The position numbers and the translations under genes were made by a program. Shown here one piece after another: positions 11,419-54,755 of a stretch of DNA of 64,000 nucleotides (positions are counted from its first letter, which is position 1; every line of letters starts with the position of its first letter). The notes under the pieces were generated by a model. It was not told where the DNA came from, made no database searches, and saw only the letters and a list, made by a program, of their open reading frames with translations. Source of the DNA: Paraphysomonas bandaiensis (taxonomy: Eukaryota; Protista; Chrysophyceae); contig CBFFRP010000218.1 in the NCBI GenBank assembly GCA_965644295.1, positions 310,001 through 374,000 of the forward strand, read 5' to 3'.

Positions 11419-11859
11419 TAGAAAATGGCAAAACTGATCATTTAAAAGAATTACCTCTTCACTCAGTTCAGCGTACATCAATTTTTGTATCACAAGGTAA
11501 TTTGTCTATTATTTCCAGCCCCGACTTAGATGCTTTTAGTACGTATTACGTATACATCACATACAAATAAAACGTTAATCTGTTACTCCTAAATATATCG
11601 GCGATCTGCATTCTAACAGTCTAACAGTGACAAGAAAAATCCAGTGTTGGAATTTGATTAAGATTTCATCACAATTGTAAAATAATTATCTGGATTCAGT
11701 TTACACTATTTTATTATACATTCGTAGAGAGTGTGGCATCACCGTTTTTTAACTACCACTCATATTAGATACAGTGCAGTTACTAGATGTTAATATTATT
11801 CGAGTTAGAGGGTCTATATATACCAACAACAAGCTGGAAAAAAACGTCCGACATTTCTG

Positions 11860-14800
11860 TTATTGGAATAGAAATCGCATATCATCAACAGTTAGCCGCA
11901 CCATAGAGCTTGCGTCGCCACCAACAGTGCCATCAAAGACGAGCTTTTTCTTTTCTTGTAGCCGCAATATGCGCTCCTCAATCGAATCTTCCACGATAAA
12001 GCGCGTGGCAAATATAGGCTTATGCTGTCCCAAACGATGAGTTCTGTCGATTGCCTAAGAATAAAACTGAACAGTCAGTTGACATAACGTATATATATAA
12101 ACCTGCATTTCAGCAGCCGGATTCCACCAAGGATCCATAATAAAAATATAATTGGCGGCCGTTAAATTTAACGCAACGCCTCCAGCTTTAAGAGAAATCA
12201 ATAACACGCTCATGTCAGGACTTTCGTGGAAATTTTTTATAATCTGCGGTAGTGTGTGAGTAACAAGGAGAGACAATTAACTCCGAGCACAACCTTGTCC
12301 CTTGCGTCTATATTCATACTTCCCACAAGCTTGGAACAGTTGATTCCCCCAAGTTGTATGCGATATTCAATGAGCTGCGCATATCAGATAAAAGACATAA
12401 ATACGAAGCTACTCACATCAAGAAAATTCACAAATTGGCTAAACACAATTGCTTTTGCTCCAGGATCCGCAGATAACATAAAGTTCAGCTCCTACGAGCA
12501 GCACTTATTGTGACGATACATTAAAATCCGATTACTATGTTACCTGCATTAATGCCTCCAGCTTGGTGCTTGACTGAAAAGAGTCCAGCTTTATTTTACT
12601 AAGAAATGATTTCTTTCTAGACTTCGATGAGTCCCATATCGACAGGCCATTATCGGGCAGCGTGGCACTATCACGAGGTTTCTCAAGTTCTACTGAAAGT
12701 GGTTTCTCACACTGTGGGCATACCGCAGAGTCAGTAGCAGATTCGGACTGTAAAACATTCAGATACTCCAATACACAAGGCTCACAGAAACAATGACCAC
12801 ACTGAGCTAATCTGGGCTCTTCAATTGGTTCGTGGCAAAAACCACAGGTACTAAGATCAGAATTCAACTCAGTAGATATTGCTGTTGACGCAGCAGCCGA
12901 TGAGTCATACGATGACATACCATTTTCGTAATATTTATCACTGTGCAGTACCAAATAAGGGTGATCAACTACTTGCCGCAATCTAATTAATATGTCAAAT
13001 ATATGCGCATAATTATGAAGAACTGTTCCCGATGCAACATAAGTATTAAACTGGGCTTGAGATTGGGTGTATAAAGCTTGGTAAAAATCTTCTTCTTGAA
13101 GATCCATTTTATCCATCCGTACTTTTACGATCCTATAATATATCTTGATGGTACGAAGTAGAATTTTAAAATGCCACACCTTTGAGGCAATTGAATATCA
13201 CTAGATCTCGTATTTTTCGTGCGCCGGAGAAGAATTTCGTCAAGAACCTAAGCGAAATTAGCTTGCAATAAAGCAACGCGTACTGACCTGCTCTTTTAGT
13301 GTTAACATAGCCCGTTTACCTTCTCCAATGTATCCTGTTCGTTTTATGGGGTTAAGAATGTGCTTATTAAAATGGCAAAAGTGCTGCATCGCAGTGTGCC
13401 CACAATCATCACAAAGCCCATTAGTGAATCTCTGACAAAGTATATCACTGTAATTGAATATATCCTTTCGTCAATATAACTTACATAATGCAAACTCTTA
13501 CAATTGCAAGACTTGGTTCGACAGAAATAAAACGCAAACGGATCCATTCGAAGAAACCTTACAAGTGAATATAATTCCCCGACGCGATTTTGAAGAGGAG
13601 TTCCAGTTAAACACCATTTATTCAACGAAACCAAATTAAAAACAGCTTTCGCGGTTGATGTACTGCGATCCTTTATTAGGTGGGCCTCATCTAACACTAC
13701 TCTGAACCAGGAAACTGAGTGCAGCAGAGATGGAACCGATTCGCGAGTGGCTTTTTTGGTAGCCAATGCAATCGCCTTTTCAACCTCCAAGTCTTCCCAA
13801 TCGTCATTCGCAATAAACTTTTTTGCCTTATACTTAGATTTAGCCTTGGAACTTGATGCATCATCATCTTCCTCAGAGCTCGAGGAAGCGCTGTCCGCGT
13901 AGTCACTGTCACTTGCTGATAAGCTCTTCTTACTAGATGTAATACGTTTACTAGATTTACCAGAACGACGCGACTTATTCACGCCGTTAGTACGCAGTCT
14001 ACTATCCTCACTTCCTTTCTTTTTAGTCCCTATACCTTTGGAGTTATTAGACGTTCGAGACTTCCTAATCATCTGCTTCTGGCGGTCAATATCATCTTCA
14101 CTGCTGGAGTCATCACTAGATAGCACTTTTCGTTTTCTACTCATCTTCTTTGGGCCCTTTAACTCAACAACGCTCCTATCCGACTTTGCCGTTCGAATTA
14201 TCCGCTTTTGTCTATCAATATCATCCTCACTGCTTTCTGAATCGCCCACTTCAAAGACTTCGGGCGCTTTTCGATTCAGATTACTTCTTTTCCTCTCTGT
14301 CTTACTCTGAGCAATTGTTCTCTTCGAACTTTCGCCGCAGAAATATTTCCTATGCATGCGCAACTTCTCGGGATAGTATTTCTTTCCACAAATGGAGCAT
14401 GTAATTTTTTTACCGGCAGTTTCGCGACGGTACTCCAATTCTAGTATTTTGTACGATGTTATGACAACATCAGCAGACTGCAACATCTTCAACGCATCTC
14501 GTCCTGCTCGACTATCCCCGTGATACACGTGCAATGTGAGCGAACCAGGCCGCGTAAAACGCTTAATTTCAGTTTGCCACTGACGAATAGCAACCGTCGG
14601 GACAACGACCAATGTATTCGCACGCAATCTATGATCCGGCTGCCTTCCATGTTCCTTGTCAGATCTAGAAAAAGAGTTATAATTTGAAGTATTCTAAATA
14701 TTTCTTCAAACCTACCTATCCCATGTCGACCTTTGTTCCCTACTTTGTTGTCGTGGGCGGTTTCCTAAGATTGTACTTATCGTTTGAATGGTGTTGTGCG

Positions 14801-16525
14801 TAACAATATACTGCGGTTGCTAATGTGAAAACACAGATGTCAACAGAAAACACGAACTCACATTGTCCGTGACGTAGAGGTGATCGGATGACTTGACAGA
14901 TATACATGCAACTTTGGTTTGCCTCAGTGGGGATATTGACGTAATATACCGACTACGCGTCACACATTTTTCTGCTTTGCTGGCATAGATTGAAGCTTTA
15001 GGGAAAATCGAGAAAGGATTAATATGCGTCGCAGTCATATCGATTTTTACGGTCCACTTGTTGCAGTAACCTGATATACCCAAACTACAATCAATTTTCT
15101 CAGCAATGCCACCCAGCGATCTCACAACATCTAACACTATATCACAGAAATATTGGCTTTCAGAAGTCAGTAATATATAGAGATGTTGGCCAGAACAGTC
15201 TATCTTCCCATTCATATCCAAAATACCCCTCAATATTTTAGTGCGGTGCTCTACACTACCCATTAAATATGGAACGGCAATTGATGGTAGTGGTGGATGT
15301 GAAGTAAAATATGGCGACAAAATTTGCTTGAACCTAGACTGTAGATTGTTCCCCATCACAAGTCTCTCCGTAAGTGTCGAGGTATCGTCCCATACATCGC
15401 CCATGATATTTAAAGTGCGCGAGAAGTGCTCCCATTCATTCTCATCGACAGTCAACGCAAGTGGTGTGTCGCAATTGACGGCAGAGGAAAGTAGAACGCC
15501 AAATGTATATGGGTCCAAGAGAAATGAATTACTGTCCTGCATAATCTCAAAGTGAACACTCTTGACTGTCGGGATTCTCCATGTCTTTCGGGGTGATGCA
15601 CAGAGATACTTCTTGGACATGTCATGATACAAATAACGCGTACTAAGAACCTGCCATGAATTCTCTCCCTCATCAGCAAGCCATAGATGGTCATCAGACA
15701 CTTCTACCCCACAGCCATCGTTCATCTGCACCCAAAACGTCTGTCGGACCCCTCTATGATATACACCTGTCACAGGTGTACCACAACCATTACTTCCAAT
15801 AACGCGGTCACCAACTTTGATATCCCCCATAGTCACCCAACCTACGGGAGTCAGGATACGAGAATCCAGCGGCTGTGCCTTACCCTACAGAATAGTGCAC
15901 ATTCTGAGCAACACAACAGCTACACTACAATACGCACCATTCCCATTTCATCGGCAAGTATCCCTCCACGCATCTGAGATTGCTCTTGATGAAGCATCCA
16001 CCCTAATCCCTCTTTTTGATAAGGTAAAAGCGGCATTAAAAGATCATCACCAGGATCTATAGGTATATTCCAATCTTTTCGAACAAGCTCATCTGGGTTC
16101 AGAGGAACCATATCTTGATCGACTTCATTCTGACTTTGCCGCACACGCTGTCTCACAAGGTGCTGTGCTGCAGAGTCTAATTCCGTGAATCCATCAAGAC
16201 TTTCCGCATTAACAATTCTTTTGTCAAACACTGTGCATGGAAGATGCTGCCATCTGGTGGAAATACCCCAGTCGCCGTCTACTATAATACCCACGCGAAT
16301 ATCTTTATGAGGAATTTTTGTGCCACATTTTTTGCATTCTGCTCGACCACTTTTAGCTTCTTCTACGACGTACTCGGGGATGCAAGCTTCAATGTGCTCA
16401 GTAGCCCGTGATGCGGGGCGAGATTGCTCGCTTACTGTGGTAACTACATCATCGAAATCACTGTCAGAAGAAATCACAATGACTTCTTTGGCTGTATCCT
16501 TTTCAATTTTCTTCTTTCCCCTCAT
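11860..16525 (-). CDS. RAD16: RAD16-like SNF2 helicase / RING E3 ligase with N-terminal PARP-type zinc finger; intein-containing precursor
   Basis: Likely ATG at 16525. Motifs in order: zf-PARP ([20 protein letters not shown]), Q motif [12 protein letters not shown], Walker [13 protein letters not shown][intein]TIQTIS, motif Ia [12 protein letters not shown], Walker [11 protein letters not shown], motif [24 protein letters not shown]3HC4 RING ([17 protein letters not shown]), [36 protein letters not shown]-terminus DDMRFLFQ* (TAA 11860-11862). Multiple GT-AG introns keep the frame. Confidence 0.93.
14793..15878 (-). mobile_element. Class-3 (Ala1, W-C-T) intein with degenerate LAGLIDADG homing endonuclease, 345 aa, interrupted by a spliceosomal intron
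   Basis: N-terminus GK|[14 protein letters not shown]; block B VSDDHLW; block [18 protein letters not shown]; after the intron, block G YIVTHN|T. Central DOD-like region: [37 protein letters not shown]. Removing it restores DEMGMGKTIQTIS. Confidence 0.95.
14811..14861 (-). other. 51-nt spliceosomal intron inside the intein coding sequence
   Basis: GTGAGT donor after ...GAC AAT, and CCGCAG acceptor before TAT ATT GTT ACG CAC AAC. Phase 0; contains an in-frame TAG (14820-14822). Confidence 0.9.
15885..15937 (-). other. 53-nt spliceosomal intron within Walker A, 6 nt upstream of the intein
   Basis: ATG GGA ATG|GTGCGT ... CTGTAG|GGT AAG GCA CAG CCG; phase 0. Confidence 0.9.
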
Positions 16526-16877
16526 TAGTGATGGTATTATCTTCGCCACTTAAGAGGAGCATGTACGAATATAGAGGTATGAAAAATGACGTCCAGTCTC
16601 GCCAGAAGAACAGAATCTGTGCGACTGAATTATCGCAGTCATAGAGCACATTCTACACATGTCCATGCGCTGTTTTTTTCATGTGGGATGGTATGTACAG
16701 TAGAGTAGGTACTGTAGATGCGGGAACAAACTCTCCTGCACAAAACGCCTATTTCTAAAACACCGGGTTTTATGTATAATCCCGAAACTAAAATGCAATC
16801 TCAGCCTTGCGAATTCCAGCCCAACCAAAGAAGCCATTAACATATCTGGATATCCGAGCGATATCATTACAATAATT

Positions 16878-17258
16878 ATGAATGAAATATTGCATACGAA
16901 TATTATAACTGAAAATGATCTGGTAAATCTACAGGCTCAGCTGGATGTCCTTTCAGTAGGACGTGGTGATTGTATAACTGTGGAAGCCTCTGGGCCCAAT
17001 GGCACTGAAGAATCAGTTTCTTTTATTCGACTGACGCCTTATGCTCTAGCGGAGCTTCAGCGTAATGCTACGGATCACCATATCAATAAGATACGAGAAT
17101 GTCCGCGTTGTCACAATGCTACAATGTTTGTGAGTGAAAAGTTGAACACCAGTGATGGGAACTGTGGCATTCAGCGTGGGACATTCGTTTGTCCTGATCC
17201 CTCTTGTGCTTTGCAACAGTGTCATGATTATGAGGGCTATGGTGATATTTTTAATTAA
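16878..17258 (+). CDS. Hypothetical 126-aa protein with possible Zn-ribbon (CPRC...CPDPSC)
   Basis: ATG-initiated single ORF divergent from RAD16, with paired Cys motifs; no family recognised. Confidence 0.4.
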   Translation: MNEILHTNIITENDLVNLQAQLDVLSVGRGDCITVEASGPNGTEESVSFIRLTPYALAELQRNATDHHINKIRECPRCHNATMFVSEKLNTSDGNCGIQRGTFVCPDPSCALQQCHDYEGYGDIFN

Positions 17259-41628: not shown

Positions 41629-41831
41629 TATATTATGTATTACGTACAAAGGTAGGTAGGTAGGTATGTACTCTGTATATATATATGAATTGTATAGATT
41701 GGATTAATTTGACCGTATTGGACCGTGGAAGTTCGGGCCGAGCGAAATCGACTTAGAAAAGGAGAACTGTTTTCCATGCCATTACTTTTGCGTTTTGCTT
41801 CTCTGTATTTGTGTCGCTTTGAGAGGTGAGG

Positions 41832-44800
41832 ATGCTCCGAGAGGTGCTGTCCTTCGCTCTGCGGGCTTGGCACTATGTTGTCACTTTATGTGGACGTATC
41901 TACTGCGTTATCTGCGTCCTGTCGAGGTTGGTACCGTCATGCAATGCTTTTAGTGGCGAACTTAATTTTCCAGCTTTCGACTGTATGGATATCAGAATCG
42001 GAGATTTCTTAGTGCAACGTTTGTGTTGGGAGTCTATTATAATAAAATTTAGGTGGTCGGGGTTGGAAATCAGTTGTTGCAGCGTGAAATGCGATGTTCA
42101 TATTCCGGATAGAAGTCGAACTTACACTAACAATGCTTCAAGAAGTAATGTCAAATGCGAAACAAGGCCTTTATGGCTGTCATTTGTCCCACCAGTCCAT
42201 ATAGAAATAGTGAGTTTGCTCCTGGTCGGGATATCAAAAGACTCTAACTTAGTCGAACTTAACATGTCTGCTCTTGATAGCAAAATAGAGAAGCGGCTGT
42301 TAAACCCTGCTTTCACTGTAGAAACAATGAATTTTCGTGTCGCTGGAAGGCATCAGGCTGTTAGTGATATAATATGCGCTGAGAAAATTAATTTTCGGAT
42401 TTGCCATCGAAATATATCCGTGGCATTAAATAGTGTTGAACTAAACGCAGATTTCAATACGTGTGACACGATTACTGACTTGCTGGGATGTCTTTTGCCG
42501 CCCCATAGAGATTGTGATGTTGAAGAAGGGGCAGGTGCTATTCAAGTTGAAACAGTATTGCAAGCTTACAAGAATAGCAACAATGAGATTGAAAAAAATG
42601 AAGATATAGGTAGAAGACAGAAAGACAGAGTTGGAGATGGGAATGCGTCGTGCTCGTACACTTGTTCACTTCCGCCCATGAAAGTTAATGTAGATATTGG
42701 AGTTATCGTTGTGGCAACAGTAAGCCGAGAGCCACCGTCCTCACGCCGACGACATTTTTCAATATGTGGAATTAATGTACAATACTCTACCTCACCAGTT
42801 TCATTCTCTTTACAATGTAAGCAGTATAGCGCTCAGCCGTTCGATACCCAACATTTGGTGGGATACGACTTAAATAGTGCGGGAAATTGGCTTATGGTAG
42901 AGTATGTTGATAAGCCCTGCGAAAGGGCTATGTCAAGTGTGAATGCATGCAGTCGTCACCCAGTACTATCTATTCATGTGCGCCCAGTTTTGTTACCTGT
43001 TTATCTCGACGATCTGTGCTCCGCCATGTTATTATGGAAGGATATTGTTTCGCTCACTGAAAGTAGGTATACACTCCGGGAACTCCGTTGCCGAAAATTG
43101 AATCGCATACGTGATACAACATCCCACACCTTCCGCCCAATTGAAGTGAATGTTCAATGCGATAGTGTAGATTTAGTGTTGTTAGTGCCAACATGGTTGA
43201 ATAAGCGATACCTGGTGTGGAGAACATGCGATTTTGGAATACGAACAATATGTTCCCCTGATCAAAACACCTGGTCACTGTGCTTATCAATTGGTAGAAT
43301 TCTGTCATTGATACAGTTTCCTGTATCTGAATCGACGCAGAAGCACGAAATTTTATCCCTAAACAAAGTATCAGTGAAATTACCTCTTCACGACCACGAA
43401 AAAGTACAATTTGCGAAGGTAGTTGAGTTCGTTGAGTCATCTCCAACAATGAGTTATGCCTATTGTTCCGAATGGTTGGAAACTAACTCATCAGCTCGTC
43501 GTATTGATCAGAGATGCTGTGCTAGTGTTGATGAATGTATAGTCTCGATATCTGACAGCGATGTAGCGGTTATTACATCAGTTATTAATGCGTTGTCGTT
43601 GTCACTGAGAACTTATGTCGCCCCTGAGGATTCATTCGCACGAATTTTTCACACCAGAAATATTCCCTGTTGTTGTCTGGATATGAATATTCATTCGTTC
43701 GAAGTAATCTTACAAAATCTTGCTGGCTCGAGTAAGTATAAGAGGTCGCCGCAAAAATTTCGGGTTGGCTCTCATGATATCGAAGTGTCTATGGCCCTGG
43801 CGCCTCCAGTTGTGCGTTGTGTCCATATTTCAACAGCATCCAGTCGTGTACAACTGACATGCTCCAGAGACGATATAGAAATACCACTTATGAATTTTGA
43901 CTTGTTTCAGCATACCAGCGAGAAGAGGAGGTTCACAATTGCTAAGTTAATATCTAGGCCTGTTGATATTTGGTTCTGCCAAGAGTCTAGTTATCCGTTA
44001 GCATTAGCCTTCGTGTCAACGGCATGTTACTTGCAGATTTACTGCCTATCTGGCCATATTGATACATCTGACTGTATAGCGCTGTCAGACTTTATCACTG
44101 AAAGCAAAGTGCAAACCTATCACTCTCGTGAGTGGTTTGTGCGGCTTTCTCGTAGGCTTCCGCATAGCGTTTTGGTTGTGCCATCAATGCATGTGAATAA
44201 TACATTGACTGCAGATATTTCTCCTCTTGTGATAGCTCTAGTAGATATTGAACGAACCCGCATCGATATGCTCCATCACTCTGTCGATGTTGGGTTTATA
44301 TTGGCAAAGTCGATTGGAATCAGTTCTGTTACGTACATTTTACCGGGGTTGTATCAGGTCAGCGGGCGCGTGCTTGATGTCTGCATCGCTGATCTCACAG
44401 AAGAGAAGTCATTTTATAAAAATGTTGTGGAATGTGTCCAATCTGAAAACGCTGCAGATGTAGCACGCCCTGTTGTTGAGTTTCACATGACGTCTTATTT
44501 GAATGCTAAGCCATTGCTGGAAGTCAATAGTCATAATCTAAGGGTCGTATATTTGCAACGAGCAGTAATGACCATCATTTCATATATAAGAGACTGTGCT
44601 CTGGCTGAATTGTTCAGATCTGTACCATATAAGTCCACACCTGTGGTTGTATCTGGTATTTGCAATGATGACCTCGTATACACTGCTCTCAGTCAAGCTT
44701 TACCTGTTCTTGACCCTGGAGTATTTCGGTTTGCCTGGAATATCAGCAATTCCGAGTTCCATTTACCTGTGAACAGCCGCAGTGACGATGGACTGGTTTT

Positions 44801-47800
44801 TGTATTTAAGCGGCTATATATGTACTCTTTGTATGTCGATTACGAGTTTTTTGGGAAAACTGGATACTCTATGGGGCCATTATGTTCGGACCGACATATA
44901 TGGCTGTCGAAATATTATGCTCTAAAATCTCTTTGCTCTGAGATAAGTACAACGAGTCGTTGCTGGGATGTAACTGCATATCCCAATCATCTACTGTCTC
45001 CCATTGCCTTTTCGCAATCTCATGACAGCTCAAACCTAAAACACGAAACCCAATTAGCCATGAATCTGACTGACTCTGTGATTTGCACATGGTGCTCTGA
45101 TAATACCATTGCGAAAGGGTTGAATATTGGTGCGCTGCTAACTATTCAGGAGGTCCACCAGGCTCCAAGTGGTTTGTATTCATCTGTATTCAATAGTTTA
45201 GGCTTTATATCTATGTACCCTTTAAATATATTTGCAACTGAACTCATGATTGAAGAGGTAGATTGGGTACTATCGAGAGGGCAGTATATGGCAATCGTGC
45301 TGCTAATTCAGCAGAATTTTCCGGAGTTAACTAAAGTGGTTCCCCCATTACCGTGCAGCGTGCCATGTAATGTACATTTGAACACCAATTTATTTGGAAA
45401 ACGGGCATTAGAAGACAGATTGCCGTTTCATATCACTGTACCATTGGATGTTGAGTATGGTCGGATTCATATGATTGAAGATAACAAAGAGTATTACCGC
45501 AGACTATTTTCGTCTCACCAGGCTAAGAGTAAATTCGTAAAAGATGAGAATTACCTCCTCTACGTAAGAGAAGAAACGGAGAATTTTGTCACACATTGGT
45601 TCGATTCAGAAGTTCGCTTGGAAACTGAGAATGACTGCGAAGTATTTGAACAATTTAATTGCTTTCAGGTACCTAACTGGTCATTTCATCACACATTTCG
45701 AAAGTATATGGAGTTCGGCTTCAAAAACTATGTCATCGCGGAAGATGATGTACTGAGTGGTGACAGTGGCAGCGACAGCGACAGTCGAACTAATCGAAGT
45801 GTCAACTCGTTGGATTCTATTGGGATAATATTTTTCACATCATTGGAATTTAATTTTTTGCGTCAGCATCACGGAGGTGGAATTAGTATAGTCGCGTCAG
45901 CTAAGGATTTTGTCATCACGAGAGGATCGAATTGGGATTCATTCCACAGTGGTTGTCGTCCTGAAGATATTGTTATGGATAGCGATGATGATTCTTTTGA
46001 TGAAAAAACTAGAGATCCACTGAACGTGTTGTATGACATCGATGATATTCCGGAAGAGTTTATTATCGTGAAACAGACTCCATGCCTCCCTGAATCGATT
46101 GATCCTCAAAGTTTCCCTGATGTCGAACGAAGGAGTATTCATTACTTTCAGAACGGAATGGCTAATTTGAGAAGGTGCATCGTAGAACTGGATGACTGCA
46201 TCGCAGTTGTGCATATTCCAGCTCTCATGCGCATCATTAATTTCTTCGTTGAGTGTATAACACTGACCGACATGAGGGAGAAAGACCATATTGATGTAGA
46301 TTTAGATATGGGTAGGTTTAATTTCAGAGCGTTGTTGGATGTTGAAATTTACGCCACGAACACTGTCGTTTGTTTTCCAAACTACACTTTCCAGTGTCAG
46401 TCGGATACTCGCGGGTTATGTGTTGGCATGGCGTCCCTTCAGTATACTCATACTTGGAGGGGGCTTATTGAAGCAGGCCCAGGGTGGGTGGGGATACAAG
46501 TCATCGTAGATATCGGAAGTGTGTTTATATCACCGCTGGATGAACTGGGTACTCAGGAAATTGAGTCCGTTGTTTCGCCGCTGAAACTCATGTTTTCTAG
46601 TCACTATTGTGTATCGCCACCTGCATCCAATGCGATGACACATTTTGAGGTTGTCCGCAGAGATGTAGATGTTCCATTCCCATCTGCTCAAGATATTCGA
46701 GAAAATCGTGCGTTGAGTGATCATGTTATGTTGCTCACTCTTAAGCCAGCGTCGCCACCCCATATTGCCGAAGATGACGAAGATGATGGGGTTATCTCAC
46801 CGAGGGTCCCAGATCATTTTTCGGAAAAATCACAGTTAATAGATATTAAAGTGTCTATTCCGGATATGATGTTTATCAATGCTGTACAGTCGTCATTATG
46901 TGATGCGTACAAAAGTCGCAAAATGAGACCACCTATCAGAGATAGTTTTCGTATATTGTTTCAGTCTTTTCACGATATAGCGCATACTTGGAGACTGACG
47001 GACATACTGAGTTATGTTCCCAACTCTGATTTGCCTAGTCTTCGTGTCAGCGACTTTATATTGGACACTGCTGACTTCCACGTTCTTATAAGAAACAATA
47101 CCTACGGAGTAAAGATTGCTAGGATTCTTATCAACGAACCACGATTTTCTTTCAACAAATCCCGTAAAGGTATCAATATTGCTGGTAGCCTTGACTCACT
47201 GTTATATTTACACAACCCCAAAATGGGCAAATTTGAACCGGCTATCGAAAGCTTAAAAGTAACGGCAATATGTGCCACAGACGTTACATCAACCTCGCAA
47301 GAGCGACCTAGTGGGGATCAAAGTCAACCTACCAGCAATACAACGAATAAGCTGCGATTCGATATGTACTTTGAACCCGTTGAAGTCAATGTTGCGCAAA
47401 GTATGTACGTTGGTACAATCGGAAAGCTTTCCTTGGGCGATGTTATAACAAGCAAATCTGCCAGTTTGCCAGTTTACCGCATTGTAAATAGACTAGGCGT
47501 TGCTGCAACATGTCTCTTAAATGTCGGTCGACGCGATGAATCAGTGGTATCTAAAGAACTGGGAGTGGATGAAGTACTGGCGGTAGATACGAGGCTATAT
47601 GATGCGCATCGAGGTGAGAGTAGAACGCGACAGCACTTCACCCGTGATTCAGACAAAAGTTTTTCGTATTCAGGACTGTCTTTCGGATTCAATAATACGA
47701 CAGATGAAAGTCACACCATTGAGTTGTTGTTTGAAATGGATAATCTGAAGTATAAGTCCCAGACTCCGGTGCCCATCGACAACGAAGGCTTATTTCAGTT

Positions 47801-50800
47801 TATTATGAAACCGATGATGAATTCATATCAGGCTCGTGAAAGGAATTTGACTGATGATTTTGTTGACATCAGTGCTCCGCCAGAGCTGTTGTATGCGCAG
47901 AAGCCAGGGAGTAACAATATCGCAGTTTTAATGAGTATGCGTGTAGTCGACACCAGTGGGACTCGAGAACTTGAACTTCGTAGTATTTGCTCGCTTCGTA
48001 ATGATACTGAGTGTGAAGTTCAGTTTCAGGCTGAGTTGTGTGGGTCCTCCGTAGATGTAACTTTAAAACCGGATGAAGAGTGGTTTTTGCCCGTCTATTT
48101 GATATCGTCTCAAACTTCGATTCATATGCGGCTCGCGGATCTTTTTTCAATTTTTAGGGGGCAGAATTCTAATGATGACCAACCGTCTCGGTACCTCGTG
48201 AAAGCCCTACCATCCCTATATTCGTTTGTACATACAACAACTGCATGGGTCGGGAGTTCAGTTTCTTTGAAAATGCGAGCGAGTCTCGTCACTATGTTTC
48301 GGACACATAGTATCGATAACTCATATGATGAACTTGCCCAGTGGACATGTATGTTACTGCCGGAGCCTCTAGATGTAGAATCATGTGGAGACGGTGATGG
48401 CACCTCCAAGACTACTAAGAAACGTCGCTGTGTTGTGAAATACCCGACTGCAGATTCATTTACACAGGAGTTTCTTACGCCTAGTAGCAATTCGCGTGTT
48501 CATACTGAGGAGTCCCCTACATCCACAGGAAGTACATTCCGCCGTTTTTCGATTCGACCAACCCCAAGCAAAAAACATTTGAATGATGTGCGTGAAAATA
48601 TGGAGAATGAGCCCAGCATGAGACAGGCTTCTGACATTTTGCATCAACGTATAGTTCCAAGTCGGTTATGTATTGTGGCTCCTATTCGTTTTGTAAATCT
48701 CTTTTGTCAACCCATTGTGTATCGATTTGCTGAGAAGAGAAGTGCTTTGAACTGTAGCGAAGGGACACTAATTGCTGGAGGAAGCATAAATCTCTACCAC
48801 AACCCTCTTCGGGGCCTGAATGTGAGTATTAGGGTTTTAAATTACAAGTGGTCGAATTGGATTCGTTTACCAGTGTTTCCACCCCATTCCAAGACATCTG
48901 AAGAGATTCTCGAGTCCCTGCGTCTCATTCACGAGGATCATCCGATTCGTGTTCCCCCACTTACGTTTAATGTTAGTTGTCATGATCGTAACGTGAAAGT
49001 GGTGTGTCCTTTGTGGCTAATAAATCGTACAGGCATGAATATACATTATGCCGAGGGTGTGTCAATGTTGCCTAGTGGTGAGCGCCTCTCTACTCGGTAT
49101 ATTCCTCATAGAGGGCAACAGCGAATTGAAACATCGCTGGTACATATACCACCCTCTGGTGTTCGTGAAGGTGTGCCTCTGGAGCGCAAAATATTTAAAA
49201 TTCCGATGAAAGACCGAGTCGGGCGACATAGCAGTATGATACTTCCTCGTGGGGGTCTCCTTCAGTTCACGGTGTGCTCTCCTTTCGACCACTGTAAAGC
49301 TGTAGTAGTCAGTCTACCTGGGAGTTGTACTGTGGATCTGTTAGTAATGGAAGTATTGAAAAAACTGTTGAATGCAGCTAACTATACTCCTTGGGTTAGT
49401 GATGGGCCACTGCCTCATGACCCAGCAGGATTTATTAACGGTCATAGTATGAAACCATCCGATTATCTATTGTTTCATCTCAGTGAGCAAGGCAGTACAC
49501 TCTCAGCCCATCCTAGGGCTCCTGTAGATATGCAGCTCATGGAAGACTCTGATTCAAAGCACTCTACGAGTGATGTATCAGTAGATGAATCGTTCTCGTC
49601 AAAGCAGACTGGTCATCACCATACCCTCGGCACTGATTATGGCGGATCCGATCTGGACGCTTTGATTTCATTGGGTTTAAATGTAACACCTTTCATCAAT
49701 GAGAACGGCACCACACTGAGAAACGATACTCAGCTGCATGCTGTACCAGAACCCCGACGATTACTTCTTTGTCACGCATCCGAGTTCAAAATTGTCGACC
49801 AGCTCGCAGGTGTGAAAATGGTACCAAAGAGAAAAGAGTCATCTGTTGTGAGTATGCTCGGTTTTAAGAAATATTTGCCGGTGATGCCGTTTAGGTATTT
49901 TGACGGCGATATACCGTTTAATCCAATGGGAGTACTGGGAATGTTTCCGTCATTTAGTGTGTGTATACCTAATGAAACGGAATGGTCTGACGCAGTTAAT
50001 GTACAAAAAGTTGACTTTGATGTGACAGGATCCCGCAATCTGGATTTGGTTGTATCGTCAAATTGCCAGACAACTCAATCTGAGTTATATGAACTCTCTC
50101 TGCTTGTGAAGCATGGGGAAGGCATATTCAAGGGCATTGCCGCTGTGACAATAGTACCAAGACTGATTTTATCATCGAAACTGCCGTTTGCTCTTCAAAT
50201 CCGTCAAGTTGTTTACGATGAAACTGGTGCAGTGACGGAGTCCTCAGCACCATTTATGTTACTCCCCGGATCTATTCAGCAGTTTCATCATCCACTGAGA
50301 CGAGGAACGAAACTTGTACAAATGATGCAGTATAGCTCTAGTAATGCTGACGAGAACTTATCGATGGAGTGGGGGGGTGAGTTAAGTCTAACTGTACTTG
50401 GAGTCACGCATGTTCGGCTTAGAAATCCTGATAAAATTGTTAATGTACGCGTGGAGTCTGTCGGATCATCACTTTATGCTACCTTGTCATTGCAAAACGC
50501 GAAATGGCCTCCCTATCGCGTCGAAAATATGACATCATTCAAAGTCCGGGTGAAGCAGGTCTGTAAAAAACTCAAGCGGGAGCCGTGTCAAGAGGATACT
50601 GTTTCACCTCGATCATCCATACCGTACGCATGGGATTATTGTTTCAATTATTCTACAGAGAAAATGCTACTTCAAGTGGACTTTGCTCAAATTGGAAACC
50701 GGTGGACATCTATTGAGTTTCCAATGAATGAAGTTGATCATACATGTGAGATTGCGTTGACACGACTTTTACCGGACCTTCGACACCCTATAACTGAAGG

Positions 50801-53800
50801 AACCGTTGATGTACGATCCCACGGATCATCTGACTGGAAGTCAGCGTACTGCGTGGTGCATAATGATATGATGTACATGTTTACCAATAGTATGATGAAT
50901 GAAATCGTTGGTGTCATTAACCTGTCATTGCCTAACCCGTCAAGTGACGAGGACGATATGGCTCGTGACCGGATGATGTTTGCCTCAGTTAGACTGCACA
51001 CCAAACGTGAATGGGACATCACGTCCATGTTTTCGAGCACGATAGGACTACAGTCAGCCCCAAGTGAACTGGACGGAATGAAGCTGTATTTTGAACGACT
51101 TCAGTTTTGGGATGTAAATTCTCTTCGTCGTGCGGCAGTGCGTATCGGTGCATGTTTAGGTGTATTTGAAAGCATTGATTTATCTGAGGACCCTTCTGGT
51201 GACGAATCATCGTCAGGCGAGGCTAGTGAGGTTGAAACCGCCAAGAGCTTCTCTGTTCACCACAGAGAGTTTGCTATGAAAGAACTGCGTTCCGTTTTGC
51301 GGAAAGGATATACTGTCGATAATCTGGTTAGTATAGTTTCAGAAACTCCGCTGTTATGTGCAGATATTCTCAACGCCCTCGTAGTTGTCGGCGAGGCACC
51401 GAATGAGAAGTATGCCTACTATCTGCTGAAGGAAATGTGCAGCAGAGCTATAATCAAGCGAGCGAAATCAGAGAAGTTTCTTCACACCGAAATTTCTGAT
51501 TCCTCTGTCGACGTTTCGACATCCAATATCGTGGCTGGTCTGCAGTTTTCAGACTTGTTACTTATTTTTCCACCTAGCCTTGCGACAGAGCTAAGTATAT
51601 CAACAGCAGAGGATAACGAATTAGAACCCTCACGAGAGTCATTTATCAAATCTGCAAGACCTAATTGCGAGTATCGATTCGAAGTTTCATTTGGATCTTC
51701 GATGTATAAATTTCGGTGCTCATCGGAGGCGGATTTATGGCGATGGTTATATTCGATTCGGCTCTGTATTGAGAAGACATGGGTAGAACATATTCAGCAT
51801 ATAGATAGACATTCTACTGGCAATGAGATATCGACCGTAGACTCACTCGAAACAACTGTAAAACTCAAAGTACGAACAGATGGACCGATGAAAGTGCTTG
51901 AACTCACCGAGGAATCTGCACTATTTCCGACTGCAGATAGCAGTGAAGTCGAGGCGGATACTGCTTTGGGATCAGGTGAATCACACGACGAATCAGAACC
52001 ACACGGCGATGAATTGAAACCGCCATCTGCAGAGGTTAATGTGTCTGTGTTTTTCCCTTCCATTGGTTTCTCGCTTGTTGACAACGACCCGACGGAGTTG
52101 GTCTACCTTAGATTTAGAGATATCCAGATATCAATAGAGAGGACGACACAAAGAATGCTCTCTGCATTAACAATTCAATATATTCAAATCGACAACCAGC
52201 TGTTAAATCCGCTCTATCCTGTCAGTTTTAGACCTCGCACGAATCATTCCATCAGTGGGGATTGCGGGGATGGTAAGAGTCAAAAGAAAGTTCTTATGTT
52301 GCCTGGACTTCAGCAGATTGGGGATGACACTTTCCCGACTGTACATGGTTTTATACAACAGCGCTTGGATGTTGGGACGAGTACAACTGCATTCGGTCTC
52401 ACAACTACCGAGGATGAGTCAGATTTACTGTACTTTGACCTTTTCTCTCTGTGGATTGCCCCCGTTGAGTTGTCTATTGATGAAGAAATATTTGTACGCG
52501 TATTAAGAGTATTACAAGCTCTTCGGTCGGCAAATTCGAAGGCCAAAGCAGGGAAAATGGTAACTGTTGATGGAGAGGCTCTAAATGAAAAAGACCCTTA
52601 TTGTGCATCAGCTTGTTTTACGGCATACCAAACGTTAAACTCGGCTGGAGTGAATATCTATGTCTTGCATTCGTCCAATACTCGCCCAGCGTACTTGTCA
52701 AAGAATATATACTTTTCACTACTCCAGCTTCATCCTGTAGACCTTGTTTTAAGCATTCGATCAACACCGGATTTCAAAATCAGTACCACTGAGGATAATT
52801 TTTTAACACTAGCTGTTCGAGTTGACTACGGTCGAATTCGACTCAATGCTCTTATGATCAATAATGTGTTTGGAATGACCTCATTTATTACGTCGATATT
52901 ATCTAAGCACTATACCTATGCTGCACTTAGCCAAATATATGCGTTAATAGGAAGCACAGATGTCATAGAAGGTTCAGTGGGTTTACTATCTAACCTTGGA
53001 ACTGGAGTGTATGACTTGTTTTATGAGCCAATAGAAGGATTGCTGGGAGATGAACAGACATTCATTGAAGGTCTCTCCAAAGGAAGTAAGAGTCTTGCTA
53101 CTCGAGCTATTGGAGGCACATCTGCGTTTACCAGTAAGATCACAGGTGGTTTGGGTAAAGGTATGTCCCTTCTGACTCTGGACAGCCGTTACCAAAAGTC
53201 CCGAGAGAAGGACCGCCTCAAGGCTGCCCAATCCGTTTCGGAGGGCTTGTACTACGGCTCGTATGAGTTTGGAAAGAATGTATATCAGGGCGTTACAGGA
53301 ATAGTTGTTGAGCCGTACAGAGGGTGGGTAGAAGAGGGGGGTGTGGGTTTAGGCATGGGAATAGCGAAAGGAATCCTTGGCGTCGCTCTCAAGCCAGCAG
53401 TTGGTGTCCTGGATCTTGCATCCAGAACAACAGAAGGTATTCGCCATGCAGCTTTCAACACTCGTCTGGAAGCAGATTACCTGAATTCATCTGGAAGGTG
53501 TCGTCTACCACGACAGTTTGGGCGAGATGGCGAGCTCCTCTTTTACACGACGCATCTATCGACTCTGCAGATGATTGTCGATAAGCTGACCATCCCTACG
53601 CGAGAGTTGCGTTTCTATGTCGTCCATGCCCTCCCAATTGTGCGAAGTTATTTTGACGCACAGTTATCTTCTGAAGGAACAGGTGGTCAGAGTATAAACA
53701 GTGAGATCAGAGGCTATGCATTAGGTAACAAATACTTTGTTTTGACGAGTGTAGACCGGATTATGCTATTAAAAGTTGAGTTTATTCCTAACAAACCAGT

Positions 53801-54755
53801 TATCAAAGTCAGTATATCATGGACATGTCCCACTGACATGATTGAGCAATTCTATAGCGATTCGAAGGAAGATACGCTATTGGTGATAAGAGAGGACAGT
53901 CGACCGCTTATTCAACACGGGGAGCCCTGGAACTCGCCGTACCCAACTATTCAAGATCCGTTCTTGATGGATTATTTTGTCTTCCAAGAGTGCTTAGAGA
54001 AACTCCTCGGTCAAAATTTGGCGCGAGAGCACCCCATGGTGCCAGATCGCGATAAGGCTATGTGCATCACTCTCAGCCGCAAACGAACGGGTATTAAAAG
54101 TATTGTACATTCTACGACACGGCACGAGTATCGTTTGTATAAATATGTCCTCTATGAGTTTACCGAGATCCCTAAAGAAATCTCTGATCAGCCATACAAG
54201 ATAACAGACAGTGGGGAAGCGACTTGTAGAGGTTCTCCTGAGGTTGTCTTTAATGCTCTCTCCAGCGTCGGTACATTTTTTGAAGAGGTGTTTGAGACGC
54301 GTATACCTTCGCGAGTAGAGTGCGAAACAGAGGTCGAGGAAACTCAGATGCTGCTTACAACTGCTCTCCCTCTGATTGACATGAGGGTATGTGGACCCGA
54401 CCAGGAGAGTGCGGCACATTTTTCGATTACGTTGAAGAGAAGAAGTGCTTCTACAGATTTAGAGTTGATCAAACGTGAAGATTTAAGCAGTCGATTAAAA
54501 CTGTCAAATAGAGATTCGTTAAAATTGATATTTGATAGTAGGAGGGCGGCTCAAAATTGGAAAATTTATATTGCCGAGTCTTCAGCGTCAGTGATGCTGC
54601 CTTCTGGAGCGGCTTCTGGTTTATTTTCTTCACAGGTATTATCGAACTCTGTGAAAAGGAATCTTGTAATTCCCCTCAGCGGAACAGACTTACGACTGGC
54701 TGAAAACCTAAAAATAGAAATTGCAAAAAATTTGTCGCGCCGAGAAAGTCTGTAG
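41832..54755 (+). CDS. VPS13: VPS13-family bridge-like lipid transfer protein (~4300 aa)
   Basis: Single ORF with first ATG at 41832. Motifs FEPAIE, YRIVNRLG, LWLINRTG, WPPYRVENMT, DGPMKVLEL, IGFSLVD, IQIDNQL, LHPVDLVLS, the Gly-rich ATG2_C region GIAKGILGVALKPAVGVLDLASRTTEGIR, and RLPRQFG. Confidence 0.9.
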   Translation: MLREVLSFALRAWHYVVTLCGRIYCVICVLSRLVPSCNAFSGELNFPAFDCMDIRIGDFLVQRLCWESIIIKFRWSGLEISCCSVKCDVHIPDRSRTYTNNASRSNVKCETRPLWLSFVPPVHIEIVSLLLVGISKDSNLVELNMSALDSKIEKRLLNPAFTVETMNFRVAGRHQAVSDIICAEKINFRICHRNISVALNSVELNADFNTCDTITDLLGCLLPPHRDCDVEEGAGAIQVETVLQAYKNSNNEIEKNEDIGRRQKDRVGDGNASCSYTCSLPPMKVNVDIGVIVVATVSREPPSSRRRHFSICGINVQYSTSPVSFSLQCKQYSAQPFDTQHLVGYDLNSAGNWLMVEYVDKPCERAMSSVNACSRHPVLSIHVRPVLLPVYLDDLCSAMLLWKDIVSLTESRYTLRELRCRKLNRIRDTTSHTFRPIEVNVQCDSVDLVLLVPTWLNKRYLVWRTCDFGIRTICSPDQNTWSLCLSIGRILSLIQFPVSESTQKHEILSLNKVSVKLPLHDHEKVQFAKVVEFVESSPTMSYAYCSEWLETNSSARRIDQRCCASVDECIVSISDSDVAVITSVINALSLSLRTYVAPEDSFARIFHTRNIPCCCLDMNIHSFEVILQNLAGSSKYKRSPQKFRVGSHDIEVSMALAPPVVRCVHISTASSRVQLTCSRDDIEIPLMNFDLFQHTSEKRRFTIAKLISRPVDIWFCQESSYPLALAFVSTACYLQIYCLSGHIDTSDCIALSDFITESKVQTYHSREWFVRLSRRLPHSVLVVPSMHVNNTLTADISPLVIALVDIERTRIDMLHHSVDVGFILAKSIGISSVTYILPGLYQVSGRVLDVCIADLTEEKSFYKNVVECVQSENAADVARPVVEFHMTSYLNAKPLLEVNSHNLRVVYLQRAVMTIISYIRDCALAELFRSVPYKSTPVVVSGICNDDLVYTALSQALPVLDPGVFRFAWNISNSEFHLPVNSRSDDGLVFVFKRLYMYSLYVDYEFFGKTGYSMGPLCSDRHIWLSKYYALKSLCSEISTTSRCWDVTAYPNHLLSPIAFSQSHDSSNLKHETQLAMNLTDSVICTWCSDNTIAKGLNIGALLTIQEVHQAPSGLYSSVFNSLGFISMYPLNIFATELMIEEVDWVLSRGQYMAIVLLIQQNFPELTKVVPPLPCSVPCNVHLNTNLFGKRALEDRLPFHITVPLDVEYGRIHMIEDNKEYYRRLFSSHQAKSKFVKDENYLLYVREETENFVTHWFDSEVRLETENDCEVFEQFNCFQVPNWSFHHTFRKYMEFGFKNYVIAEDDVLSGDSGSDSDSRTNRSVNSLDSIGIIFFTSLEFNFLRQHHGGGISIVASAKDFVITRGSNWDSFHSGCRPEDIVMDSDDDSFDEKTRDPLNVLYDIDDIPEEFIIVKQTPCLPESIDPQSFPDVERRSIHYFQNGMANLRRCIVELDDCIAVVHIPALMRIINFFVECITLTDMREKDHIDVDLDMGRFNFRALLDVEIYATNTVVCFPNYTFQCQSDTRGLCVGMASLQYTHTWRGLIEAGPGWVGIQVIVDIGSVFISPLDELGTQEIESVVSPLKLMFSSHYCVSPPASNAMTHFEVVRRDVDVPFPSAQDIRENRALSDHVMLLTLKPASPPHIAEDDEDDGVISPRVPDHFSEKSQLIDIKVSIPDMMFINAVQSSLCDAYKSRKMRPPIRDSFRILFQSFHDIAHTWRLTDILSYVPNSDLPSLRVSDFILDTADFHVLIRNNTYGVKIARILINEPRFSFNKSRKGINIAGSLDSLLYLHNPKMGKFEPAIESLKVTAICATDVTSTSQERPSGDQSQPTSNTTNKLRFDMYFEPVEVNVAQSMYVGTIGKLSLGDVITSKSASLPVYRIVNRLGVAATCLLNVGRRDESVVSKELGVDEVLAVDTRLYDAHRGESRTRQHFTRDSDKSFSYSGLSFGFNNTTDESHTIELLFEMDNLKYKSQTPVPIDNEGLFQFIMKPMMNSYQARERNLTDDFVDISAPPELLYAQKPGSNNIAVLMSMRVVDTSGTRELELRSICSLRNDTECEVQFQAELCGSSVDVTLKPDEEWFLPVYLISSQTSIHMRLADLFSIFRGQNSNDDQPSRYLVKALPSLYSFVHTTTAWVGSSVSLKMRASLVTMFRTHSIDNSYDELAQWTCMLLPEPLDVESCGDGDGTSKTTKKRRCVVKYPTADSFTQEFLTPSSNSRVHTEESPTSTGSTFRRFSIRPTPSKKHLNDVRENMENEPSMRQASDILHQRIVPSRLCIVAPIRFVNLFCQPIVYRFAEKRSALNCSEGTLIAGGSINLYHNPLRGLNVSIRVLNYKWSNWIRLPVFPPHSKTSEEILESLRLIHEDHPIRVPPLTFNVSCHDRNVKVVCPLWLINRTGMNIHYAEGVSMLPSGERLSTRYIPHRGQQRIETSLVHIPPSGVREGVPLERKIFKIPMKDRVGRHSSMILPRGGLLQFTVCSPFDHCKAVVVSLPGSCTVDLLVMEVLKKLLNAANYTPWVSDGPLPHDPAGFINGHSMKPSDYLLFHLSEQGSTLSAHPRAPVDMQLMEDSDSKHSTSDVSVDESFSSKQTGHHHTLGTDYGGSDLDALISLGLNVTPFINENGTTLRNDTQLHAVPEPRRLLLCHASEFKIVDQLAGVKMVPKRKESSVVSMLGFKKYLPVMPFRYFDGDIPFNPMGVLGMFPSFSVCIPNETEWSDAVNVQKVDFDVTGSRNLDLVVSSNCQTTQSELYELSLLVKHGEGIFKGIAAVTIVPRLILSSKLPFALQIRQVVYDETGAVTESSAPFMLLPGSIQQFHHPLRRGTKLVQMMQYSSSNADENLSMEWGGELSLTVLGVTHVRLRNPDKIVNVRVESVGSSLYATLSLQNAKWPPYRVENMTSFKVRVKQVCKKLKREPCQEDTVSPRSSIPYAWDYCFNYSTEKMLLQVDFAQIGNRWTSIEFPMNEVDHTCEIALTRLLPDLRHPITEGTVDVRSHGSSDWKSAYCVVHNDMMYMFTNSMMNEIVGVINLSLPNPSSDEDDMARDRMMFASVRLHTKREWDITSMFSSTIGLQSAPSELDGMKLYFERLQFWDVNSLRRAAVRIGACLGVFESIDLSEDPSGDESSSGEASEVETAKSFSVHHREFAMKELRSVLRKGYTVDNLVSIVSETPLLCADILNALVVVGEAPNEKYAYYLLKEMCSRAIIKRAKSEKFLHTEISDSSVDVSTSNIVAGLQFSDLLLIFPPSLATELSISTAEDNELEPSRESFIKSARPNCEYRFEVSFGSSMYKFRCSSEADLWRWLYSIRLCIEKTWVEHIQHIDRHSTGNEISTVDSLETTVKLKVRTDGPMKVLELTEESALFPTADSSEVEADTALGSGESHDESEPHGDELKPPSAEVNVSVFFPSIGFSLVDNDPTELVYLRFRDIQISIERTTQRMLSALTIQYIQIDNQLLNPLYPVSFRPRTNHSISGDCGDGKSQKKVLMLPGLQQIGDDTFPTVHGFIQQRLDVGTSTTAFGLTTTEDESDLLYFDLFSLWIAPVELSIDEEIFVRVLRVLQALRSANSKAKAGKMVTVDGEALNEKDPYCASACFTAYQTLNSAGVNIYVLHSSNTRPAYLSKNIYFSLLQLHPVDLVLSIRSTPDFKISTTEDNFLTLAVRVDYGRIRLNALMINNVFGMTSFITSILSKHYTYAALSQIYALIGSTDVIEGSVGLLSNLGTGVYDLFYEPIEGLLGDEQTFIEGLSKGSKSLATRAIGGTSAFTSKITGGLGKGMSLLTLDSRYQKSREKDRLKAAQSVSEGLYYGSYEFGKNVYQGVTGIVVEPYRGWVEEGGVGLGMGIAKGILGVALKPAVGVLDLASRTTEGIRHAAFNTRLEADYLNSSGRCRLPRQFGRDGELLFYTTHLSTLQMIVDKLTIPTRELRFYVVHALPIVRSYFDAQLSSEGTGGQSINSEIRGYALGNKYFVLTSVDRIMLLKVEFIPNKPVIKVSISWTCPTDMIEQFYSDSKEDTLLVIREDSRPLIQHGEPWNSPYPTIQDPFLMDYFVFQECLEKLLGQNLAREHPMVPDRDKAMCITLSRKRTGIKSIVHSTTRHEYRLYKYVLYEFTEIPKEISDQPYKITDSGEATCRGSPEVVFNALSSVGTFFEEVFETRIPSRVECETEVEETQMLLTTALPLIDMRVCGPDQESAAHFSITLKRRSASTDLELIKREDLSSRLKLSNRDSLKLIFDSRRAAQNWKIYIAESSASVMLPSGAASGLFSSQVLSNSVKRNLVIPLSGTDLRLAENLKIEIAKNLSRRESL

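Follow-up and report, generated by a model that had tools for sequence, protein, structure and literature searches.

This study concerns a stretch of 64,000 nucleotides (nt) from the chrysophyte Paraphysomonas bandaiensis (assembly GCA_965644295.1, contig CBFFRP010000218.1, positions 310,001 to 374,000), hereafter the window, and within it a RAD16-like SNF2 gene on the minus strand whose Walker A motif is split, at GK/T, by an in-frame insert of 345 codons (15878-14862 joined to 14810-14793). In our judgement the insert is very probably a genuine and long-resident class-3 intein. Inteins of this class have no N-terminal nucleophile and are defined by the triplet Trp(B:12)-Cys(F:4)-Thr(G:5), referred to as WCT, together with Thr or Ser at the +1 position (Tori et al., 2010; PMC2807308). 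Positions given below are those of the window, in which the gene and all of its parts lie on the minus strand, and a slash within a motif marks the boundary of an extein, intein or exon.

With the introns removed, the protein reads ADEMGMGK/AQPLDS...HLW...YIVTHN/TIQTIS. The insert is encoded by two exons (339 and 6 residues, 345 in all), beginning with the GCA codon of Ala1 (15878-15876) and ending with the codons of His344-Asn345 (14798-14793), and its removal restores GMGK-TIQ, comparable to the intein-free SNF2 paralogues of the same genome, which read DEMGLGKT followed by IQ or LQ. When the 10 introns are taken out according to the RNA junctions, the host gene forms an uninterrupted frame of 1400 codons from 16549 to a stop codon at 11862-11860, with its first ATG at 16525. 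The intein occupies residues 207-551 of this frame, and 1055 residues remain without it (1047 from the first ATG). Re-reading and translating 16200-14500 reproduced, to the base, the position, coordinates and residues of the insert as given in the original prediction, which had been made from the sequence alone. Plus-strand open reading frames (ORFs) overlapping the intein were without support and were rejected.

Every residue of the class-3 signature is present in the insert. These are Ala1; His64 and Trp66 in block B, placed by alignment (HLW, 15681-15689; His64, B:10, 15689-15687; Trp66, B:12, 15683-15681); Cys325 at F:4 (14904-14906), which is the predicted initiating nucleophile and aligns with the Cys of VRCVEV in 6bs8; Tyr335; Thr343-His344-Asn345 in block G (YIVTHN by translation, residues 340-345, 14793-14810; Thr343, G:5, 14801-14799); and Thr at +1. 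In a phmmer search against the PDB, the best sequence match was the class-3 DnaB-1 intein of M. smegmatis (6bs8, E 6e-8), followed by the DnaB-1 intein of M. chimaera (6rix and 6riy, E 2e-6); the alignments pair residue 1 with residue 1, HLW with HQW and VACISV..HLYV with VRCVEV..HLYL. Residues 1-339 (14862-15878) comprise the N-terminal half of the HINT domain with blocks A and B, a degenerate LAGLIDADG domain and block F as far as LYVTDN, as judged by phmmer, AlphaFold 2 and Foldseek. The AlphaFold 2 model of these residues, built on an alignment of 55 sequences, has a predicted local distance difference test score of 87.3 and a predicted template-modelling score of 0.88. Foldseek matched the model to PI-SceI across its full length (E 7e-13), its HINT part to the class-3 DnaB inteins (root-mean-square deviation 1.7 A, 33% identity) and its middle domain to I-DmoI. 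The model, the Foldseek matches and the continuity of the exteins thus place a HINT-fold domain in frame within a conserved host motif, as expected of an intein. The class-3 (Ala1/WCT) assignment made from the sequence stands, given that the full signature is present and conserved in the family and that the closest structures are class 3.

A HMMER search of 1.84 billion representative proteins returned 11,390 homologues at E<=1e-3, the best at E 8e-60; these values and the PDB and Foldseek scores put the match well outside chance. Among the best 150 of the 11,390, nearly all read GK/AQPLD...LYVTDDFIVTHN/T(S), most of them at a GK/T or GK/S site, and approximately 34 have SNF2 helicase hosts reading xDEMGLGK/.../TIQ. 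The N-exteins of the family mostly end in GK, and the +1 residue is Thr or Ser in nearly all members. His64, Trp66, Cys325 and Tyr335 are invariant and the C-terminal Thr-His-Asn nearly so in the 55-sequence alignment, a pattern which holds over 153 members, with the block B His in 153/153, the block B Trp in 152/153 and the block F Cys in 153/153. Ten members were termed eukaryote-like on the grounds of GT-AG introns and fragmented gene calls. The C-terminal Thr, His and Asn are found in 10/10 of these and in 141, 140 and 143, respectively, of the 143 other members, 89 of which have Ala at residue 1. Relatives occur in 446 phage records, mostly in mycobacteriophage helicases and terminases and at less than 30% identity, and the look-alikes of the intein in the Atlas are mainly from Uroviricota and bacteria. 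The best relatives outside the eukaryote-like clade described below are only 30-39% identical to the window intein, and a length-limited homologue search gave nine matches with no named eukaryotic protein among them.

The transcripts retain the insert. Contigs of four runs (X8, X11, X12 and X14, the last a declared metatranscriptome) were placed on 11700-16900, and the stretch was found in runs under three organism labels and in several marine metatranscriptomes, of which two had been selected for poly-A. The contigs define ten RNA junctions; each is GT..AG when read on the minus strand and spans 40-53 nt. The intron preceding GK is removed in contigs of X8, X11 and X12. A nested intron of 51 nt within the intein coding sequence, in phase 0 and between blocks F and G (GTGAGT...CCGCAG, 14811-14861, junction 14810/14862), is removed in X11, X12 and X14 and has the characteristics of a spliceosomal intron. 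One X11 contig of 3422 nt, with all downstream introns spliced, extends from the gene's 3' end to position 15665 within the intein; the link between the intein and the first exon is given by an X8 contig, and an X14 contig spans both introns flanking block G. The insert is kept in these transcript contigs as part of the RAD16-like ORF, and in RNA-type runs a proportion of 0.78-0.85 of the sampled words was found, which exceeds what an intein-less transcript could hold. As block G (YIVTHN) sits on a separate exon, one RNA-splicing step is needed for a complete intein. Strain differences between the assembly and the RNA contigs were seen at 15288, 12948 and 16496; that at 15288 (T>C), the only strain polymorphism within the intein, is a synonymous change in the codon of Leu197 (CTA>CTG).

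The middle domain retains the LAGLIDADG fold, as indicated by the I-DmoI and PI-SceI matches, and has lost the residues of an active endonuclease. The two LAGLIDADG motifs of the family end in GDG and DTDG, whereas those of the window end in SSA and DMNG. The remnant of motif 1, TFGVLLSSA (15480-15506; family consensus LLGDG), has Ser132 at the position of the catalytic Asp, and that of motif 2, LRGILDMNG (15207-15233; family consensus LLQGLxDTDG), has Asn223. Among the non-eukaryote-like members, the catalytic position is Asp or Glu in 121 of 143 (85%) for motif 1 and Asp in 131 of 143 (92%) for motif 2, compared with none of the 10 eukaryote-like copies for either motif. His64, Trp66, Cys325, Tyr335, Thr343, His344 and Asn345 are found in 10/10 of the same eukaryote-like copies. 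From its sequence, the endonuclease domain is predicted to be folded yet catalytically dead, and the element would therefore no longer be mobile and would be inherited vertically. Such a pattern is that expected of an immobile intein which must still splice, as it lies in an indispensable motif. The GC content of the insert is like that of its flanks, and neither flanking or transposon-like repeats nor an Rfam family were found around it.

Two further members of the family are present in the assembly (62.6 Mb, 669 contigs), one in an SWR1/SRCAP-like and one in a SMARCAL1/HARP-like SNF2 gene. The SWR1-like copy (G000:C125:130017-130970, plus strand; locus L007, 1501-2475) has 325 residues, is 39% identical to the window intein and reads intron/GK/AQPYDC...FIVTHN/TIQVGV; its orthologues were found on three metagenome contigs (L002-L004). 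The SMARCAL1-like copy (G000:C123:62168-63214, minus strand; locus L008, 1480-2547) has 356 residues, is 35% identical and reads GK/AHPVES...VVTHN/. A similar SMARCAL1-like copy (L005) comes from the same run as one of the RAD16-like orthologues (L040). No other intein was found in the genome beyond the three class-3 copies using the Pfam Intein_splicing and LAGLIDADG_3 models. Six short ORFs among the best database matches correspond to these three host genes; the contigs on which they lie, from metagenomes or runs, show GT-AG introns and fragmented gene calls.

Three of the six are RAD16-like orthologues of the window gene, found in metagenomes (L001, L040 and L041). Their exteins are 50-77% identical to those of the window in conserved blocks, including the zf-PARP region, and their inteins are 34-36% identical. 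All three carry an intron at the identical codon boundary, LYVTEN/FI(V or I)THN; the SWR1-like and SMARCAL1-like copies are without the nested intron. In an unrooted tree of 52 sequences (IQ-TREE, LG+C20) nine eukaryote-like inteins and P0060 form one clade (support 96/83), within which RAD16 (97/71) and SWR1 (97/93) subclades are seen, and which stands apart from the sampled phage, bacterial and metagenomic members. P0060 is carried by the run contig L039 and is a SMARCAL1-like intein copy which reads IIADEMGLGK/AQPYSS and lacks the intron preceding GK; within the eukaryote-like clade its partner is P0106 (support 100/99).

In the host gene, the first exon of the N-extein (15938-16549), covered by RNA contigs, encodes a zinc finger of PARP type and the beginning of the SNF2 domain (Pfam zf-PARP, E 1.5e-14; SNF2-rel_dom, E 1.3e-6), and is followed by a GT..AG intron of 53 nt (15885-15937) directly before the Walker A Gly-Lys codons (15879-15884), which are extein residues -2 and -1. 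Beyond the intein, Thr+1 (14790-14792) opens the C-extein and supplies the Thr of the GKT motif. The rest of the C-extein (11860-14789) contains SNF2 lobe 1, the C3HC4 RING and Helicase_C in nine exons separated by eight introns of 40-53 nt. The Pfam order along the exteins is zf-PARP, SNF2-rel_dom (E 1e-33 in the C-extein), zf-C3HC4 (E 1e-5) and Helicase_C (E 6e-7). A C3HC4 RING between the two helicase lobes is the arrangement of the Rad5/Rad16 group, and RAD5 (6l8n, E 7e-22) is the best PDB match of the ATPase lobe and likewise of the RING segment. No HIRAN domain was found in the exteins, and an extra N-terminal zf-PARP is present. The host had been predicted to be a RAD16-like SNF2 protein encoded by an intron-containing eukaryotic gene, and the domain architecture and the RAD5 match support this; RAD16-like, of the Rad5/16 group, is a fair label, and a role in excision repair may be supposed from it.

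An intron just before GK is also present in eight intein-free SNF2 paralogues (L010, L012, L013, L015, L019, L022, L026 and L031). In two more (L014 and L017) an intron lies 5-6 nt upstream of that position, and six paralogues are contiguous here. Viewed across the gene family, a GT-AG intron of 40-60 nt at L/GK (DEMGL/GKT) occurs in at least 11 SNF2 paralogues, whether an intein is present or absent. The recurrence could reflect an ancient intron of the whole family or, alternatively, repeated intron gain at a proto-splice site resembling GGTAAG. That the intron travelled with the intein between paralogues is ruled out by the eight intein-free paralogues which have the same intron.

Several other explanations of the insert were considered. 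It could be a decayed relic of an intein that no longer splices, either kept in the product or residing in a non-functional gene for which other SNF2 paralogues provide cover. The dead endonuclease site, the sub-threshold matches of the Pfam splicing-domain models and the fact that splicing itself is deduced rather than seen are all compatible with such a relic. However, every class-3 splicing residue has been kept in 10/10 eukaryote-like copies despite identities of approximately 35%, the 1400-codon frame is intact and transcribed, and the same pattern is seen in three different SNF2 genes of an essential type. Moreover, an insert in GK/T would abolish ATP binding, and yet the exteins are 50-77% conserved between orthologues; we thus regard a relic as very unlikely. 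It is also highly improbable that the intein splices by a route other than that of class 3, for example with Thr+1 attacking the N-terminal junction directly, in the manner of class 2. Ala1 taken alone would fit class 2, and the eukaryotic class-3 candidates are known from sequence, but the WCT triplet is invariant and the +1 residue is Thr, whereas class 2 inteins have no WCT triplet and use Cys+1 (PMC2807308). The nearest solved relatives, furthermore, are experimentally class 3.

Removal of the insert from the transcript, whether as a long intron or as an alternative exon, might be suspected from the very short introns around it and from the acceptor 6 nt upstream, and had been named at the outset as a result that would overturn the original prediction. 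Yet contigs of X8, X11, X12 and X14 which are spliced at neighbouring introns run through the insert, no junction skipping 14793-15878 was found among the contigs of the four runs, and the 0.78-0.85 of sampled words in RNA-type runs argues the same way; we consider this explanation extremely improbable. The mostly phage and bacterial membership of the family would be consistent with the insert having arrived recently by lateral transfer, being still mobile, or representing contamination of the assembly by bacterial or phage DNA. Against this, the host gene is eukaryotic and intron-rich and the insert contains a spliceosomal intron; the intein and this nested intron are both common to the orthologues; the best outside relative is 30-39% identical, the endonuclease is dead, the composition is that of the flanks and there are no flanking repeats. 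To a recent or foreign origin of this kind we give almost no credence.

A long-resident class-3 intein remains the explanation that we favour, although some points weigh against it. Support for the proposed mechanism comes from residue conservation and homology, and the AlphaFold 2 model stops at residue 339, leaving out the last six residues of the intein. The RNA evidence consists of assembled contigs, which say nothing of expression level and may miss a minor isoform; that the runs are RNA was only guessed for three of the four, though their intron-less contigs argue that they are. The term eukaryote-like, as applied to the metagenomic relatives, rests on introns and gene calls, and since the tree is unrooted, a single acquisition, like the direction in which the intein moved, can only be deduced. 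Finally, Pfam scans of the intein gave sub-threshold matches to Hint_2 and PT-HINT (E 0.06-0.11) and no match to LAGLIDADG_3, and NCBIfam scans gave nothing useful. With matches that are sub-threshold or irrelevant, the Pfam and NCBIfam scans were set aside as evidence either way. A search with Hint and LAGLIDADG_3 hidden Markov models had been put forward as a check, with the lack of any Hint match counting against an intein. That outcome was nearly reached, in that LAGLIDADG_3 was not matched and Hint matched below threshold, while direct searching and the fold were clear; homology of the intein is visible only by direct sequence search and fold and not with curated models.

We infer that class-3 protein splicing, well supported by homology, would restore the Walker A loop. 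The steps proposed here are modelled on three inteins, those of mycobacteriophage Bethlehem DnaB and D. radiodurans Snf2 and DnaB-1 of M. smegmatis. In the precursor, the Walker A loop is split by 345 residues and the enzyme should be dead as an ATPase. Cys325 (F:4), positioned by His64 and Trp66, would attack the peptide bond between Lys(-1) and Ala1 to give a thioester branch, and the N-extein would then be passed to the hydroxyl of Thr+1. Cyclisation of Asn345 would release the intein, and an O-to-N shift would restore GMGK-TIQ, giving a frame of 1055 residues (1047 counted from the first ATG) as the active enzyme.

In terms of history, all three copies most likely descend from the phage and bacterial P-loop intein family typified by GK/AQPLD...VTHN/T, through one ancient acquisition and subsequent spread among paralogues. 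An ancestor of this protist lineage would have acquired a P-loop class-3 intein of phage or bacterial origin long ago; the intein would then have spread among SNF2 paralogues with a DEMG(L or M)GK/TIQ site before endonuclease activity was lost, and vertical descent would have followed, with the intron gained later inside the RAD16 copy. Lateral acquisition of the intein from a bacterium or virus, as first suggested, is plausible in so far as phages and bacteria account for the overwhelming part of the family and the eukaryote-like members form one clade; the suggestion does not hold as a single event in one gene, as three copies exist. A more speculative proposal, which we think unlikely, is that the three inteins have long been kept as a shared post-translational switch. 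The thiol-dependent Cys325 step might make maturation of the RAD16-, SWR1- and SMARCAL1-like proteins, three SNF2 ATPases of genome maintenance, conditional on redox state or metals, as is the case for the mycobacterial class-3 DnaB inteins; in the RAD16-like gene, RNA splicing of the nested intron might act as a further checkpoint, as block G can be made only from a spliced message.

Some other features of the genome and the window were observed. The upstream part of the SWR1-like gene (L007, 17-1288) contains approximately 3.5 tandem units of 327 nt in one ORF, encoding an acidic sequence rich in Ser, Asp and Glu (AMLKNESEIPIEQLRAMYGGMEGASASDS). On the plus strand of the window, 41826-54755 is a single ORF of 4309 codons, the first 1058 residues of which have no Pfam match at E<=1e-5. 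The genome contains at least seven silicon-transporter (PF03842) genes and only three SH2 matches, cadherin repeats occur in ORFs of 3000-4600 codons, and no light-harvesting-complex (PF00504) or PsbO (PF01716) match was found in it. The organism looks like a silicon-handling marine heterotroph.

Nuclear inteins are rare in eukaryotes. The intein described here would extend those of class 3 to a second, unrelated-looking marine protist lineage, where it occurs as a fixed and vertically inherited element of three SNF2 paralogues at an identical P-loop site, and in the RAD16-like copy RNA splicing must precede protein splicing. Since Pfam and NCBIfam miss this intein family, surveys of eukaryotic inteins built on them probably undercount. 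As regards priority, a listing of inteins in eukaryotic nuclear genomes included no SNF2 or class-3 intein (Green et al., 2018; PMC5784728), and bacteria and phages were the only described sources of class-3 inteins before these were reported in nuclear genes of Anaeramoeba, all of them in P-loops (Gallot-Lavallee et al., 2023; PMC10710043). The Anaeramoeba hosts include SWI2/SNF2 and HARP/SMARCAL1, a link to phages was proposed, and three inteins were verified, the class-3 candidates not being among them (PMC10710043). The novelty claimed for the window intein is thus reduced, as eukaryotic nuclear class-3 P-loop inteins were already described in 2023; what stands is that no paper mentioning a RAD16 intein was found, in literature whose coverage was incomplete and gives no proof of priority. 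The same limits of coverage and priority apply to an intron inside an intein coding sequence, for which no paper was found either.

Among the closest published parallels is cluster 1 of Anaeramoeba, likened here by published text, which is also class 3 and nuclear and sits in the P-loops of several ATPases, some unrelated and some paralogous. Unlike Anaeramoeba, with 45-103 inteins, the window genome has no Pfam-detectable inteins besides the three class-3 copies, and the organism occurs in marine plankton metatranscriptomes; on these two grounds the genome was judged not to be that of Anaeramoeba itself. The RAD16-like host is absent from the main text of the Anaeramoeba paper (PMC10710043). 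In contrast to cluster 1, the copies in the window genome have dead endonucleases, are common to orthologues and in one case carry a conserved nested intron.

The SNF2 host and the class-3 signature are shared with the inteins of bacterial and phage SNF2 proteins, including that of D. radiodurans Snf2, which is likened by description. For the latter a block F branched intermediate has reportedly been demonstrated (Brace et al., 2010, as cited in PMC5222942). Metagenomic SNF2 members of the family have an insertion point identical to that of the window, xDEMGLGK/AQPL...VTHN/TIQ. The bacterial and phage SNF2 hosts are, however, prokaryotic or viral and intron-less, most full-length members keep the LAGLIDADG Asp, and identity is only about 30-39%. 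The class-3 DnaB inteins (6bs8; 6rix and 6riy) align at Ala1, HxW and the block F Cys and also occupy a helicase P-loop site, but as mini-inteins of a bacterial replicative helicase they have no endonuclease domain; two studies describe splicing of the mycobacterial class-3 DnaB inteins as responsive to oxidants and zinc (PMC6195587, PMC7360933). With the yeast VMA1 intein PI-SceI and the PRP8 and RNA polymerase inteins, the window intein shares the combination of HINT and LAGLIDADG domains inserted at a conserved position in a nuclear gene, but these are class 1 inteins with Cys1 and approximately 13% identity, and the endonuclease of PI-SceI is active. When set against these systems, the kind of element is already known, and its novelty lies in the lineage, the RAD16-like host, the clear vertical inheritance and the conserved nested intron.

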